Origin: Octopus sinensis
Taxonomy: Eukaryota
Assembly (NCBI RefSeq): GCF_006345805.1
Contig: NC_043023.1
Coordinates: forward strand, 9,238,001-9,302,000
Reading direction: 5' to 3'
DNA: 64,000 nt
Shown piece by piece: positions 18,941-60,772 of the stretch. The position numbers and the translations under genes were made by a program. Numbering within the stretch: the first letter of the stretch is position 1; every line of letters begins with the position of its first letter. A model generated the notes under the pieces. The model did not search any database and was not told the DNA's origin. It was given only the letters and a program-made list of their open reading frames with translations.

Positions 18941-20509
18941 TACACAGAAAAGAAACAAGGAGAGAAAAAAATGCGTGTAGGAGCTAACGATCCAACATAT
19001 ATATGTTACAGTTTTTTTTAAAGAGATGATACGACAAAGGGCAGCATAGACGACAAAGCATGTGGGGTTTAACTCGACTAAGCGACATGTTAAACGTCCG
19101 TTTGGAGGATTCCAGGCCCTAACCTACAATGGAAAATTGGGAGTAGGAGTGTATGTAATTATTGAACCCACCGAAAAGGTGTCAGTGGATATACTCCCCC
19201 TTGAGATGATCAGCGCTCCGTCTAATACGACCGATCGTATGGTTGACAGCAAAACGAATGGAGTTATAATGGGGATATTATATGTAAATGTGTACATCCC
19301 GGAAATGGGCTGCAGTGGGAGACAGCAACGGGGAAGTGAACCATTGAAACGTTGCAGAAGACGAAGTGTTGAGATTGGATTGCTGGTGTGGCTTTAGAAT
19401 AAGAAGCATAAAGTGAGCCGATACAATCACACGAGAATATGTAATAATGAATTACTTTAAAAATAAGGCATATTGGCTTACTGCGTTGTATGTATGTATA
19501 TAGTATGTCTATATTTTGAATGCAGTGTAAGTTGACGAAATATAAGCAAATTAACGAAATAAAAGCACATGTATAGAACTGCTAATTTAACGGTAAATAC
19601 TACAACAAATATTACAGAGAGACAAAGAAGTATATAGATATAGGATAAATGTCTTAATGTAAGGGTAAATATGTAATTGCAAATAGCTTGCAACCTTACA
19701 AATGCTGCGATTGTTATTAACTGGTAATGGAACTGGCATTGACCCTGATCAGCCCTCACACACGTATAGTATGTTTAATAACCTAACTCACGCAGAATGG
19801 CACAAACACACACTCTGAGACATATAAACATTCATACACTTAGACTCATACATTCACAGACAATTACACCAATCATATGCGAAAGGTGATGTCGTCGTCG
19901 TCGTGGTTAGAGTTAAAAGCAAGTATATGGAAGTGAAACAATATATCACATTACAATATAGATGTTATTCTTTCACTTTTATTCTTCGAGTTTTGAGACG
20001 TAATACGGAATCAGTGCCAATGTTGCATTGTTTTAACGCGAAACATTTACATGTTGACACTCACGAGTTCTGATAGTATTATCATGTAGAGTTTGATTTG
20101 GTTAGGTTGAGCCGTTTGTGAATGCGTTGGGAACAAAGAGAGAGACAAATGATTTTATATATACAGATGATTTGCGAGTGTGCGCGCGGGCATGCCTGTT
20201 CGCAAGTGTGTGTATGTGTGTGTGTGTGTGTGTGTGTGTGCTTTAAGGTGATAGGTCTTCAGTTTTTATTTCATATTATCACTCATGAATGCTATAATCT
20301 ATAACTATATTCTTCACACTGATCGAAATTCAGTTTTTCTTTATTTTTAAATTATGACTTTGAAAGTAAGCGAAATCAAGGATAAATTCATCGCATGAAA
20401 CAGGGACCAATATTTGTCCTTCGTAGAATTTGCAAAATGAATGAAATAACAATAGAGTGTCTGATATTTTGTATTTTCTTGTTTTACAGATTAATCTACA
20501 CATGAAAAT

Positions 20510-20700
20510 ATGTTCCGGCAAAATCTCCATTTTATGTTGACTTTTGTGTTGATAATGTACATGAGATTTCTTTTGGAGTCTCATGCTGTCTCAGACGTTT
20601 GCAGTATTTGTAGATGTAGTCGTGGAGGTCAGGAAGTAGACTGTAGATTTCTCAATTTGACTTCTGTTCCACAAAATATTGGCCAGAACGTTATTGATTT
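20510..20700 (+). CDS. First coding exon: signal peptide + LRR N-terminal cap (LRRNT)
   Basis: [26 protein letters not shown]|[37 protein letters not shown](L): hydrophobic leader, CxxCxCx8C cap, L-x-x-V-P. Acceptor ttttacag at 20488-89; donor GTAAGT at 20701, phase 2. Confidence 0.9.
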
Positions 20701-59700: not shown

Positions 59701-60772
59701 TTTGTGGTTCGGCAAAGGATACCGAGAGAATAAGTGCTAGTCTTTCACCAAATAAATAATGCTGGGCTCGATTGGTTCGAATAAAGGATCTAGCATGCCC
59801 ATTGTCATATTACAGAAAAAAGTACATGTTCAAACGTGTTACATACTCACACACACACACACACACACACACACACACCACACACACACACACACACACA
59901 CACATATATATATATATATATATATATATATATATATATATATAGACACACACACAAATATATACATATATATATATTGTATATGTGTGTATGTGTTTAC
60001 CAATCTGTCTGGCGATTGATAGATATATTGGTAAAGTGATAGATAGATAGATAGATAGGTAGGTAGATAGATAGATAGATGAATAGATAGATAGATAGAT
60101 AGATGGATAGATAGATAGATAGATAGATACATGTCTCCAGTTCTAGTTTAGTCTTCTTTGCCCTTTTTATCTCATTTATCAATAACTGCTGGTCGTTAAT
60201 TTTATTCCTATTCTCATCCTTCTCTTTTGTTATAGTTTCAACTTTGTATATCAGCGTCATCCTCCTCATCATCATTCCAAATATTAAGAGCACCATTAGT
60301 AAATATTGTTATCATAATCATCATCTGCGTCCTTGTAGTGGTCGTCACCATTATCGTCATCATGATCATCGTCATCATCACCATCATCATCATCCTTATC
60401 AGTCATAATCTTAAACCACAGATGCAATGCCAGCAGACCGAAACAACCTCATCACTACCAAATCCGTCACCATCAATGCCCTCATCATAATAATTATCGC
60501 TTTCATCATCACTTAACACAATGCCATACATCTTCATTATTATCTACATAATTTTCAGTTATCATTTTCATAATCGTTTTCACCAAATTGTCTCACTTCT
60601 ACTTATTTTTCTTCTATTTCAGCAGCTAATTCATTGGATATAATATTTGAAATATATGACTAATCACTTCTATGTTTTTTCTTCTTGAATTATCTTTCAG
60701 GGATCTATCCAATAATTCAATCGTGAAAATTGAAAATGGATCGTTTGCAAATCTTCCGAAATTAGAACAGAT
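20510..60772 (+). CDS. Multi-exon secreted/cell-surface leucine-rich-repeat protein gene (signal peptide + LRRNT + >=6 single-LRR exons); 3' end outside window
   Basis: Join 20510-20700 with LRR exons at 25054, 32450, 39376, 46833, 57388 and 60701; all have AG acceptors after pyrimidine tracts and GTAAGT (one GCAAGT) donors in phase 2. No LRRCT, TM, TIR or 7TM exon found in the window, so the family (TLR-like, LGR-type GPCR or soluble LRR) is unresolved. Confidence 0.85.
21440..22440 (+). mobile_element. Degenerate mariner in intron 1 of the LRR gene
   Basis: [35 protein letters not shown] and PYSPDLAPS motifs. Confidence 0.85.
22633..22735. repeat. (CAT)n microsatellite
   Basis: ~34 triplets; source of the spurious poly-His ORF. 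Confidence 0.95.
25054..25123 (+). CDS. LRR exon 1 (70 nt as assembled; 2 nt short of 72-nt consensus)
   Basis: ctttcag|A AAT CTA TCC AAT AAT GCA ATC GTG AAA ATT GAA AAT GGA TCG TTT GCA AAT CTT CCC AGC TTA AAA TTT|gtaagt = [23 protein letters not shown]. Confidence 0.75.
25430..26850 (+). mobile_element. R4/Dong-like (RLE) non-LTR retrotransposon 3' half, degenerate (cassette 1)
   Basis: [52 protein letters not shown]-like ETIDH...C...RHD...IHW region, terminal [10 protein letters not shown]. Confidence 0.85.
27150..27360 (+). mobile_element. Second short Dong/R4-like fragment (also at 34369, 41525, 61782)
   Basis: [15 protein letters not shown] resembles [15 protein letters not shown]. Confidence 0.55.
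27400..29120 (-). mobile_element. Degenerate LINE 5' region (probable CR1-like ORF1 + endonuclease); repeats at ~34600-35940, 41760-43520, 62020-63760; diverged relatives at ~53185-53700 and 56400-56940
   Basis: Recurring broken ORFs (28733..29035, 28411..28623, 28211..28417); clade assignment is inference. Confidence 0.5.
29801..30375. mobile_element. Foldback/MITE-like element with ~205-bp inverted arms (29801-30006 and 30168-30375), 161-bp spacer
   Basis: Left arm acaacttataaacaag...gaattttctcgtcatcagcgataa is the reverse complement (roughly 90%, by eye) of right arm ttatcactaatgaagagaaaattc...cttgtttataagttgt. Confidence 0.9.
32450..32521 (+). CDS. LRR exon 2 (intact, 72 nt, phase 2-2)
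   Basis: ctttcag|A GAT CTA TCC AAT AAT GCA...CCC AGC TTA AAA TAT TT|gtaagt = (L)[23 protein letters not shown](L). Confidence 0.92.
32690..34060 (+). mobile_element. R4/Dong-like fragment (cassette 2)
   Basis: ORF 32699..33052, same motifs as 25430-26850. Confidence 0.85.
36721..37292. mobile_element. Foldback element copy (arms 36721-36925 and 37087-37292)
   Basis: Same inverted arms as 29801-30375. Confidence 0.88.
39376..39448 (+). CDS. LRR exon 3 (73 nt as assembled; +1 nt)
   Basis: ctttcag|A TAT CTA TCC G/TAT AAT GCA...CCG AGA TTA TGG CGT TT|gtaagt; removing one base gives YLS(Y/D)[19 protein letters not shown](L). Confidence 0.75.
39800..41215 (+). mobile_element. R4/Dong-like fragment (cassette 3)
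   Basis: ORFs 39812..40081, 40522..40752 and 40656..40898. Confidence 0.85.
44168..44739. mobile_element. Foldback element copy (arms 44168-44372 and 44534-44739)
   Basis: Same inverted arms as 29801-30375. Confidence 0.88.
46833..46905 (+). CDS. LRR exon 4 (73 nt as assembled; A-run length changes +2/-1)
   Basis: ctttcag|A TAT CTA TCC GAT AAT GCA [aa]ATC GTG AA- ATT...CCC AGC TTA ACA TTT TT|gtaagt; corrected reading [23 protein letters not shown](L). Confidence 0.72.
47250..48665 (+). mobile_element. R4/Dong-like fragment (cassette 4)
   Basis: ORFs 47264..47482, 47492..47680 and 47974..48258; many small indels. Confidence 0.8.
48935..49195. repeat. Noisy (AAT)n tract at a cassette rearrangement junction
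   Basis: Cassette 4 sequence stops at ~48920 and resumes at the distal end of the foldback right arm (tccttgtttataag) at ~49195. Confidence 0.85.
50884..52112 (-). mobile_element. 5'-truncated Tx1/L1-clade LINE inserted into a (GATA)n tract
   Basis: C-terminal zf-RVT-like region: [33 protein letters not shown]...CIWWTRLK; purine/pyrimidine-skewed 3' UTR; AATAAA-containing tail ccttgtgtggccaataaagaaactt running into (CTAT)n; GATA repeats on both flanks. Confidence 0.8.
54070..54125 (+). ncRNA. Type I hammerhead ribozyme candidate (U3-A8 core variant, palindromic helix III)
   Basis: gctgca-TTGAAAA-gggg(caata)cccc-GAAA-cgcg-TC-tgtagc: stem I 6 bp (1 GU) plus distal ctggc/gccgg; stem II 4 GC bp; predicted cleavage after C54113. 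Confidence 0.7.
54440..55680 (-). mobile_element. CR1-clade LINE, RT C-terminus and 3' end
   Basis: [12 protein letters not shown]...VFADDTKL (RT catalytic motif); [22 protein letters not shown]...[12 protein letters not shown]...FKRSLDRFL. Confidence 0.92.
55855..56070 (+). mobile_element. Second tRNA-derived SINE family, diverged copy
   Basis: ggcagcgtgctggtag...gctgagttcaaattcaaccgaagtcgacttc (B-box-like GAGTTCAAAT). Confidence 0.65.
57388..57459 (+). CDS. LRR exon 5 (diverged, intact 72 nt, GC donor)
   Basis: cttacag|A TAT CTA GCC AAT AAT GAA ATC GCG ATT ATT AAA CAT GGA TCG TTC GAA GGT CTC ACC AAT TTA AAA AAG TT|gcaagt = (L)[23 protein letters not shown](L). Confidence 0.85.
58720..59400. 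repeat. Two diverged direct copies (~180 bp) of an unclassified short interspersed repeat (58720-58905 and 59215-59400)
   Basis: Shared blocks gaatcgatt.ttgtaatttttt.caaga.ttat.cacgccctgata.cgtcggtatc and ggatggaggatg. Confidence 0.7.
60701..60772 (+). CDS. LRR exon 6 (intact, 72 nt, phase 2-2)
   Basis: ctttcag|G GAT CTA TCC AAT AAT TCA ATC GTG...CCG AAA TTA GAA CAG AT|gtaagt = (L)[23 protein letters not shown](I/M). Confidence 0.92.

Follow-up and report, generated by a model that had tools for sequence, protein, structure and literature searches.

Leucine-rich repeat exons amplified one by one at the 5' end of a probable adhesion receptor gene in Octopus sinensis

The DNA analysed here, a stretch of 64,000 nt from Octopus sinensis contig NC_043023.1 (C27:9,238,001-9,302,000; hereafter the window) in an assembly of 2.72 Gb and 13,516 contigs, probably holds the start of a single ~171-kb gene for a G-protein coupled receptor of the adhesion class (aGPCR), whose leucine-rich repeats (LRRs) are encoded one per 72-nt exon, within cassettes that were amplified while the codons for exposed residues were kept, or made, different. 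The gene would run from C27 ~9.2585 to 9.4291 Mb, with window positions 20510-64000 covering its 5' end (first ~40 kb, 5' quarter). We included another 140 kb of downstream DNA in the analysis; positions there are given as ext coordinates, i.e. the window numbering carried on past 64000.

Single-repeat exons and their cassettes

A first-pass annotation, made from the letters of the window, had described a signal-peptide/LRRNT exon followed by six homologous LRR exons. We recover all six at 25054, 32450, 39376, 46833, 57388 and 60701, reproduce the spacings claimed for them (7396, 6926, 7457, 10555 and 3313 nt) and can place the peptides quoted at 20687-20701, 32451-32522, 57389-57460 and 60702-60770 on the + strand. 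The statement that all exons are of phase 2-2 holds for 32450, 57388 and 60701 (intact 72 nt) and fails, as assembled, for 25054 (70 nt) as well as 39376 and 46833 (73 nt, stops). As for the leader exon, it does encode a hydrophobic leader and a Cys-rich, LRRNT-like cap, while the Pfam LRRNT profile itself stays under its cut-off (20.5 vs 25.8 bits). The parts in the window are these:

20510..20700, + strand: first coding exon with ATG at 20510, leader, Cys-rich LRRNT-like cap, phase-2 end and GTAAGT donor
25054..25123, + strand: type-1 LRR exon E01, 70 nt to its GTAAGT donor; a 2-nt deletion relative to all other copies shifts the frame as assembled
32450..32521, + strand: type-1 LRR exon E02, intact 72 nt, phase 2-2, AG/GTAAGT
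39376..39448, + strand: type-1 LRR exon E03, 73 nt; a +1 insertion (CCGTATAAT) gives in-frame TAA/TGA; the collinear paralogue copy L019 is intact
46833..46905, + strand: type-1 LRR exon E04, 73 nt; homopolymer indels AA>AAAA and AAAA>AAA; the collinear paralogue copy L006 is intact
55612..55652, + strand: type-3 LRR exon relic (pseudo-exon), 3' half and GTAAGC donor only
57388..57459, + strand: type-2 LRR exon, intact 72 nt, GC donor (GCAAGT), flanks unlike the type-1 cassette
60701..60772, + strand: type-1 LRR exon E05, intact 72 nt
24381..48936, + strand: three and a half tandem cassettes, units of ~7.2-7.4 kb from ~24381, 31773, 38703 and 46149, 92-97% identical, forming a period-two higher-order repeat
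59600..64000, + strand: start of the next cassette run, which goes on through nine type-1 exons past the window, the last at genome 9,349,066
25454..25864, + strand: fragment of a high-copy dispersed element, ~330 nt downstream of the LRR exon in every cassette, with others from ~32699, 39800 and 47260

According to a motif scan of the 140 kb downstream, the LRR array runs on for 85 kb past the window end and comprises there nine more type-1 exons (five in 4.3-kb cassettes), two type-4, two type-3 and six type-2 exons, all of which are on the + strand, 72 nt long and bounded by AG/GTAAG sites; neither this continuation nor the type-3 relic at 55612-55652 was part of the first-pass annotation. 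The gene total comes to 25 one-LRR exons spread over 125 kb, 14 of them type-1. Intact 72-nt exons number 22 (21 with AG/GTAAG donors and one with a GC donor), each coding for xLxxNxIxxIxxGxFxxLxxLxx, and it is in these that the proposed layout of one LRR per symmetric phase-2 exon is seen. Phase 2 is also common to exon 1, every LRR exon and the LRRCT exon (intact frames). The N-terminal exon is single, as had been said, throughout the window and the next 140 kb; four near-identical ones elsewhere on the contig head arrays of their own. The description of the locus as one gene with an exon array, and not a gene array, is supported.

Self-comparison bears out the near-identity claimed for the ~7-kb cassettes, which measure 7.2-7.4 kb and match best at period two (offset 14322, 95.9% over 8.4 kb). 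Two cassette classes exist, 7-kb and 4.3-kb, in which ~1.3 kb downstream of the exon and ~1 kb ahead of the following one are common to both. In a tree built from intron flanks, E10-E14, whose 4.3-kb cassettes have 99.2-99.5% identity, group as a clade specific to this gene (support 100/99), and the same tree reveals positional orthology between E03 and copy L019 of paralogue D (D_L019), E04 and D_L006, E05 and C_L028, as well as E08-09 and C_L023. Together with paralogue copy numbers of 3, 4, 6, 7 and 14, growth by recent whole-cassette tandem duplication, with a differing outcome per paralogue, is well supported. Two of the exons, E08 and E09 (ext 79037-79108 and 86398-86469; genome 9,317,037 and 9,324,398), are identical including ±400 nt while their full 7.4-kb cassettes are 97.6% identical, which points to local gene conversion or local assembly collapse.

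The cassette interior is partly transposon-derived and microsatellites are present, much as the first reading of the window had it. Its 4.5 kb give 9,646 first-look candidates for dispersed repeats, and the open reading frame (ORF) fragment that sits ~330 nt after each exon gives 24,983 on many chromosomes, where open frames reach up to 1000 aa. Pfam searches with five cassette and upstream ORFs returned nothing significant (best zf-RVT, E=0.17) so that the transposon call rests on copy number; the high-copy element may be LINE-like. Long AT and GATA/AGAT microsatellites lie at 36443-36721, 10090-10504 and 52113-52696, with a match between the two GATA arrays (10.1 kb and 52.1 kb).

The type-3 relic has had its 5' half replaced by a repeat, an inverted copy of which is found at ext 146981-147295. 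Relic and type-2 exon (window 55300-57460), 1.8 kb apart, copy a distal type-3/type-2 pair (ext 128216-129993; 1.7 kb apart), and paralogue C has a 99% identical copy of the block's type-2 exon (C27:8,923,985). Judging from these matches, the block moved into the proximal array before the genes duplicated.

Receptor body, class and relatives

Past the LRR array, homology to family proteins identifies the following parts:

ext 151525-151689: LRRCT exon, by homology to family proteins (P0121); frame broken by three 1-nt deletions
ext 154355-155008: 10-Cys module, by homology to family proteins
between the 10-Cys module and the GPS region: several linker exons, by homology to family proteins
ext 168929-169927: HormR-like pair, by homology to family proteins
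ext 180548-180688: GPS motif CSCNHLTSFAILM, in which the GAIN exons end, by homology and Pfam GPS
ext 182201 to 191102: five exons for the seven-transmembrane (7TM) region, by homology and Pfam 7tm_2, 118-127 kb past the window end

These downstream exons match family proteins in order through GPS and TM1-7, with the GPS and 7tm_2 exons lying 160-170 kb downstream. On the conceptual protein Pfam finds LRR_8 (E=1.7e-35), GPS (E=9.5e-15) and 7tm_2 (E=5.4e-36, profile positions 3-250/250), and the GPS carries an HL|T cleavage motif (predicted cleavage) and a TSFAILM tethered-agonist sequence. By sequence, the receptor class is that of an adhesion (class B2) GPCR, both GPS and 7tm_2 being present. 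As part of the gene that we consider probable, the predicted domain order is signal peptide, LRRNT, ~22-25 LRRs, LRRCT, 10-Cys module, HormR-like region, GAIN/GPS and class-B 7TM. Its extracellular LRR domain would be of the 'typical' kind with caps: LxxLxLxxNxIxxIxxxxFxxLxx repeats are present, LRRNT is subthreshold (see above) and LRRCT recognisable but frame-broken. An AlphaFold model of family protein P0208 (see below) has a pLDDT of 80-98 over the LRR and LRRCT region. Of the marks of a Ly6/uPAR (three-finger) module, the 10-Cys module shows the cysteine pattern that ends in CCxxxxCN (C...CC.DNLCN, with invariant Cys columns); it has no Pfam match and an AlphaFold pLDDT of 40-57, i.e. low confidence, and for a three-finger fold we claim no more than this pattern.

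The LGR- and VLR-like frame in which the array was originally put does not fit. An LGR-type class-A receptor was rejected on finding 7tm_2 and GPS and no 7tm_1, and assembly by a somatic mechanism like that of variable lymphocyte receptors (VLRs) was rejected as the + strand carries all 25 exons, each bounded by AG...GTAAG(T/C) or GCAAGT sites and in one common phase. The exons expected further downstream were in part found, namely more cassettes, LRRCT and 7TM; for TIR there was no match in the conceptual protein and, with downstream exons coding for GAIN and 7TM, a Toll-like receptor was likewise rejected.

Top database matches are octopus proteins (O. sinensis, O. vulgaris and O. bimaculoides) named 'adhesion G-protein coupled receptor G6-like', which are 46-81% identical over GAIN/GPS and 7TM; one of the best, P0135, carries a Death domain (PF00531). 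An octopus-specific expansion of aGPCRs has been described whose 'group 3' has LRRs in 5/22 sequences and one Death domain (Ritschard 2019, PMC6408891); the expanded genes are co-localised, expressed in axial nerve cord, suckers and skin, and reported to show signs of positive selection (PMC6408891). Our gene matches this group as a putative member, by its features and not by the paper's sequence identifiers: LRR ectodomain, leader, one Death-domain member and co-localised genes are the same, whereas the paper is without exon arrays and we find 25 LRR exons over 125 kb.

Several gene models link the parts seen here. P0124 (O. sinensis RefSeq, 1022 aa), an aGPCR model, runs from an exon-1-like leader (MFRQ...AHAV.D.CSIC.C) through three LRRs to 7TM, and P0133 (~6 LRRs) and P0139 (~15 LRRs) also go from a leader as in exon 1 to 7TM in one model; the exon 1 N-terminus heads P0076/P0206, too. 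In P0205 (O. vulgaris) the N-terminal exon is spliced to five type-1 exons, and in P0208 (O. sinensis, partial) a type-1 exon is spliced to a pair of type-2 exons, after which come LRRCT and the Cys-rich module. P0121 (O. sinensis RefSeq) is a paralogue with 70-100% identity per exon, and P0122 (O. vulgaris) has no LRRs.

On the contig itself, the four further N-terminal exons (89-98% identical) are at C27 8.346 (+), 8.709 (-), 8.953 (-) and 9.001 (+) Mb, and each heads, in its own direction, a run of type-1 exons with type-2 exons after them, so that five paralogues lie within 1-1.1 Mb. An exact-pattern scan of 2.7 Gb with a 28-nt exon core yielded 40 genome copies vs 0 for the reversed control, and all placed copies are in this one 1-Mb cluster; chance is thereby excluded as the source of the array. 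The five genes have 6, 3, 7, 4 and 14 of them, with six more on unplaced contigs, and the gene of the window has the largest array. This paralogue comparison rests on 30 short loci and position lists.

The family may reach further. The N-terminal exon with ±~100 nt matches ~35 other places at 68-78% identity over nearly all 401 nt (window 20400-20800), many on small unplaced contigs, which suggests that a much larger, poorly assembled family shares the leader exon. Contigs C11413 and C11289 show the same series of matches at a ~1,140-nt offset and are probably duplicate haplotigs; on C12407 there is one more array, made up of four type-1 exons and several of type 2, and P0208 may derive from one of these contigs. 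In P0123 (O. vulgaris) and P0072 (O. sinensis) there are near-identical LRR runs of other sequence types (e.g. NQISNTGKGFIKNL.../NKISEIEPGF... pairs), from which exon-cassette amplification seems to be family-wide and not confined to the cluster.

Hypervariable codons in the type-1 exons

To describe how the exons differ, we took into one alignment 31 type-1 copies, each with 400 nt of the intron before it and 106 nt of the intron after it. Nucleotide diversity (pi) is 0.04-0.08 in the introns and ~0 in the exon core, yet it rises to 0.4-0.68 at exon nt 2-3, 11-12, 56-61 and 65-70, making codons 1, 4, 19, 20, 22 and 23 hypervariable. In the register L1x2x3L4x5L6x7x8N9 these correspond to x2, x3, x5 and x8 plus the pair of residues that precedes L1. 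The L/N/F skeleton does not vary; this includes the TTA Leu codon (nt 62-64) wedged between two hypervariable patches. In the AlphaFold models for P0205 and P0208, x3-L4-x5 falls in the beta-strand of the repeat. As had been proposed, the exons are diversified, and the variation falls on codons for the predicted exposed binding surface. Type-2 exons vary as well, at x5, x7, x10, x2 and x3.

NG86 estimates of nonsynonymous (dN) and synonymous (dS) divergence are 0.61 and 0.55 in the six hypervariable codons and 0.028 and 0.035 in the other 17. More telling is the contrast with flanking DNA among the youngest cassettes: E10 and E11 have 7/72 differences in the exon against 7/4225 elsewhere (p=9e-10), E11 and E12 have 7/72 against 14/4225 (p=3e-8), so cassettes of 99.3-99.5% identity differ 30-65-fold more in the exon. 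At the same time 28/31 type-1 copies are intact, that is, of exact length and with consensus splice sites. Periodic, skeleton-sparing variation of this kind rules out neutral decay as its source, and the pattern points to selection at the protein level, which may be diversifying or may preserve differences while gene conversion homogenises the rest.

On the reading we favour, the solenoid would have been lengthened by unequal crossing-over between 4.3-7.4-kb units of intron plus exon that carry transposon fragments. The cassettes would stay similar by recency and/or gene conversion and codons for solvent-exposed beta-strand positions would be kept, or made, different, each repeat presenting a different patch on one long germline-encoded binding surface. 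We infer that intact exons are spliced together into mRNA and that the receptor acts like other aGPCRs, a ligand or force on the N-terminal fragment exposing the tethered agonist; the three broken exons and the LRRCT break would be assembly errors or very recent lesions.

Competing readings and parallels

Several points weigh against an amplified and functionally diversified array. Within the hypervariable codons dN/dS is only ~1.1 and saturated, hence 'positive selection' rests on the contrast between exon and flank and not on omega. An equal pattern would result if short-tract gene conversion shuffled patches that already existed; indeed, the patch PRLWRL recurs in E03, E06 and D_L019 with different flanks, suggesting that such shuffling takes place. 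As assembled, 3/14 type-1 exons are frame-broken, the LRRCT exon has its three 1-nt deletions, and two exons of paralogue A, L007 and L008 (C27:8,365,740 and 8,348,406), have a GT>CT donor change in common (TTTCTAAGT); both are likely dead exons, with the lesion older than their duplication. Moreover, no database protein matches the conceptual N-terminal part of the locus (in this respect, calling the gene 'hidden' was fair) and P0121, of the RefSeq paralogue models the closest, begins within a type-2 LRR exon, without signal peptide and with two LRRs only, which together indicate that annotation pipelines have left the arrays unjoined to the receptor body.

All three broken type-1 exons belong to the first four cassettes and the collinear copies in paralogue D are intact. 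Compared with their D counterparts over 3.3 kb, E01-E04 have indel:substitution ratios of 0.4-0.8, mostly 1-nt homopolymer changes, whereas the E05/L028 pair has 0.09; the LRRCT breaks, too, are homopolymer contractions (AA>A, TT>T, GG>G; sum -3). Given this 1-nt homopolymer indel profile we regard the exon breaks as probably artefactual, the profile being that of an unpolished long-read consensus in repeats. An option that strikes us as unlikely is that the array is mostly dead wood, with the mRNA using few LRR exons and most cassette exons being decaying intronic pseudo-exons of neutral duplication. Three of six window exons are frame-broken after all, one has a GC donor, one more is a truncated relic, P0121 and P0124 hold only 2-3 LRRs, no matching transcript-derived protein turned up, and Ectocarpus LRR genes are known to carry non-coding LRR copies in their introns (PMC3341825). 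However, the length and splice sites of 28/31 copies are preserved, variation is confined to codons for exposed residues with the L/N/F skeleton invariant even between patches, the models P0205 and P0208 include type-1 exons, and around the broken exons the frequency of 1-nt indels, relative to substitutions, is 4-9 times that of a neighbouring cassette pair.

Still less probable, to our minds, is that two genes are involved, the N-terminal and cassette exons encoding a secreted or glycosylphosphatidylinositol (GPI)-anchored LRR protein and the aGPCR having its own start. Current annotations do split the region in this way (P0205 'IGFALS-like', a 190-aa stand-alone model; P0122/P0121 'ADGRG6-like'), P0121 and P0122 are without the N-terminal array and P0076 'isoform X2' ends after the Cys-rich module. 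Yet P0121, P0122 and P0123 have no signal peptide and start within or after LRR exons, which marks them, as sequences, as truncated models, whereas P0124, P0133 and P0139 unite signal peptide, LRRs and 7TM in one model; between 20.7 and 151 kb we found no other N-terminal exon and no stop-containing terminal exon, and phases are compatible throughout. The least credible option sees the cassettes and/or paralogous arrays as haplotypes or mis-joined long reads. The assembly is gappy (N run at 4404-4503; 13,516 contigs), the unplaced C11413 and C11289 carry the same matches at a constant offset as duplicates would, 1-nt indels are dense around E01-E04, and E08 and E09 are identical over ±400 nt. 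Against this, adjacent cassettes differ by 0.5-8% with different hypervariable codons and come in two sizes, 4.3 and 7.3 kb, neither copy number nor order is the same among the five arrays, which occupy both strands, and proteins from O. vulgaris and O. bimaculoides show near-identical repeated LRR units.

Going beyond the favoured reading of one aGPCR gene with an amplified array, the exons might be the substrate of regulated or stochastic exon choice, cells such as sucker or axial-nerve-cord neurons expressing different LRR subsets or lengths. This would be feasible as the exons are symmetric (phase 2-2) and differ mainly at binding-face residues, although we hold it to be doubtful. If true, five clustered genes would give a large repertoire of aGPCR ectodomains and a cell-identity or chemotactile code, with a logic like that of Dscam1 or clustered protocadherins, to which copy-number polymorphism between individuals would add a further layer. 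When intron 1 (20701-23033) was compared with the ±500-nt exon flanks for docking/selector complementarity of the Dscam kind, the longest reverse-complement match was 10-11 nt, i.e. chance level, in what is a weak test of one possible docking location.

As for parallels, glycoprotein-hormone receptor/LGR genes also have one LRR per ~72-nt exon and phase-2 introns. They differ in coding for class-A 7tm_1 receptors from fixed, ancient and diverged exons, whereas the octopus gene combines 7tm_2 and GAIN/GPS with recently amplified, near-identical exons. At lamprey and hagfish VLR loci, too, a single N-terminal exon is surrounded by numerous LRR modules, and variability is concentrated on concave beta-strand residues; there, however, the germline gene is incomplete and receives its cassettes by somatic copying, not as spliced exons. 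The octopus modules are co-oriented and in phase with canonical AG...GTAAGT sites so that ordinary splicing suffices, no somatic mechanism is needed or indicated and the VLR analogy fails on mechanism. The vertebrate adhesion GPCRs ADGRA2/ADGRA3 (GPR124/GPR125) resemble our gene in having N-terminal LRRs and LRRCT ahead of HormR, GAIN and 7TM. ADGRA proteins have ~4 LRRs plus an Ig domain, against ~22-25 LRRs, a 10-Cys module and no Ig domain detected by Pfam in the octopus gene, and they are only distant (ADGRA3 of Gadus, E=1e-14, 22% identity; ADGRG4/G6/G2, ~1e-50).

Precedents for the architecture exist in Ectocarpus and Tetrahymena. The LRR-ROCO candidate pathogen receptors of Ectocarpus have one 72-nt, 24-aa LRR per exon; their exons have been duplicated and shuffled, their introns contain LRR copies that are non-coding, and the binding face is under diversifying selection (PMC3341825, Zambounis 2012), but these are unrelated genes of a brown alga for cytosolic ROCO GTPases, with small introns and not 4-7-kb transposon-laden cassettes. 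In Tetrahymena, LRR exons of equal length are arrayed in tandem, their bias towards phase 2 is extreme, and they have expanded clonally through unequal crossing-over, possibly with LINE-like elements involved (PMC6564038, 2019), although there the exons are 90 bp long, belong to thousands of genes in a ciliate and lack a GPCR body. For an animal GPCR, no description of an LRR exon array was found in the open-access literature searched.

In our view the feature is real and moderately novel; only combinatorial use of the exon array, if borne out, would make it highly interesting. aGPCRs are poorly understood, and their expansion in octopus may have a second, hidden dimension, a binding solenoid that grows exon by exon within each gene and whose new repeats differ at surface positions, a signature seen in plant R genes, VLRs and Ectocarpus receptors. 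That few LRRs have been detected in the family fits with arrays that span >100 kb of repeat-rich, error-prone sequence and are cut off by gene predictors. Corrected models would change the domain architecture inferred and provide candidate recognition receptors in the octopus peripheral nervous system.

Upstream of the gene, the 100-N scaffold gap at 4404-4503 is followed by a 76-nt tandem repeat (4505-6207, 22.8 copies, 89% matching), and with the gap adjoining such a repeat the join of the flanking sequences is not assured. Also upstream, window 2-2743 and 10800-13802 form a ~2.7-kb direct duplication (94% identical); the latter copy holds an ORF at 12780-13199 that, albeit without a Pfam match, looks like the tail of a non-LTR retrotransposon.

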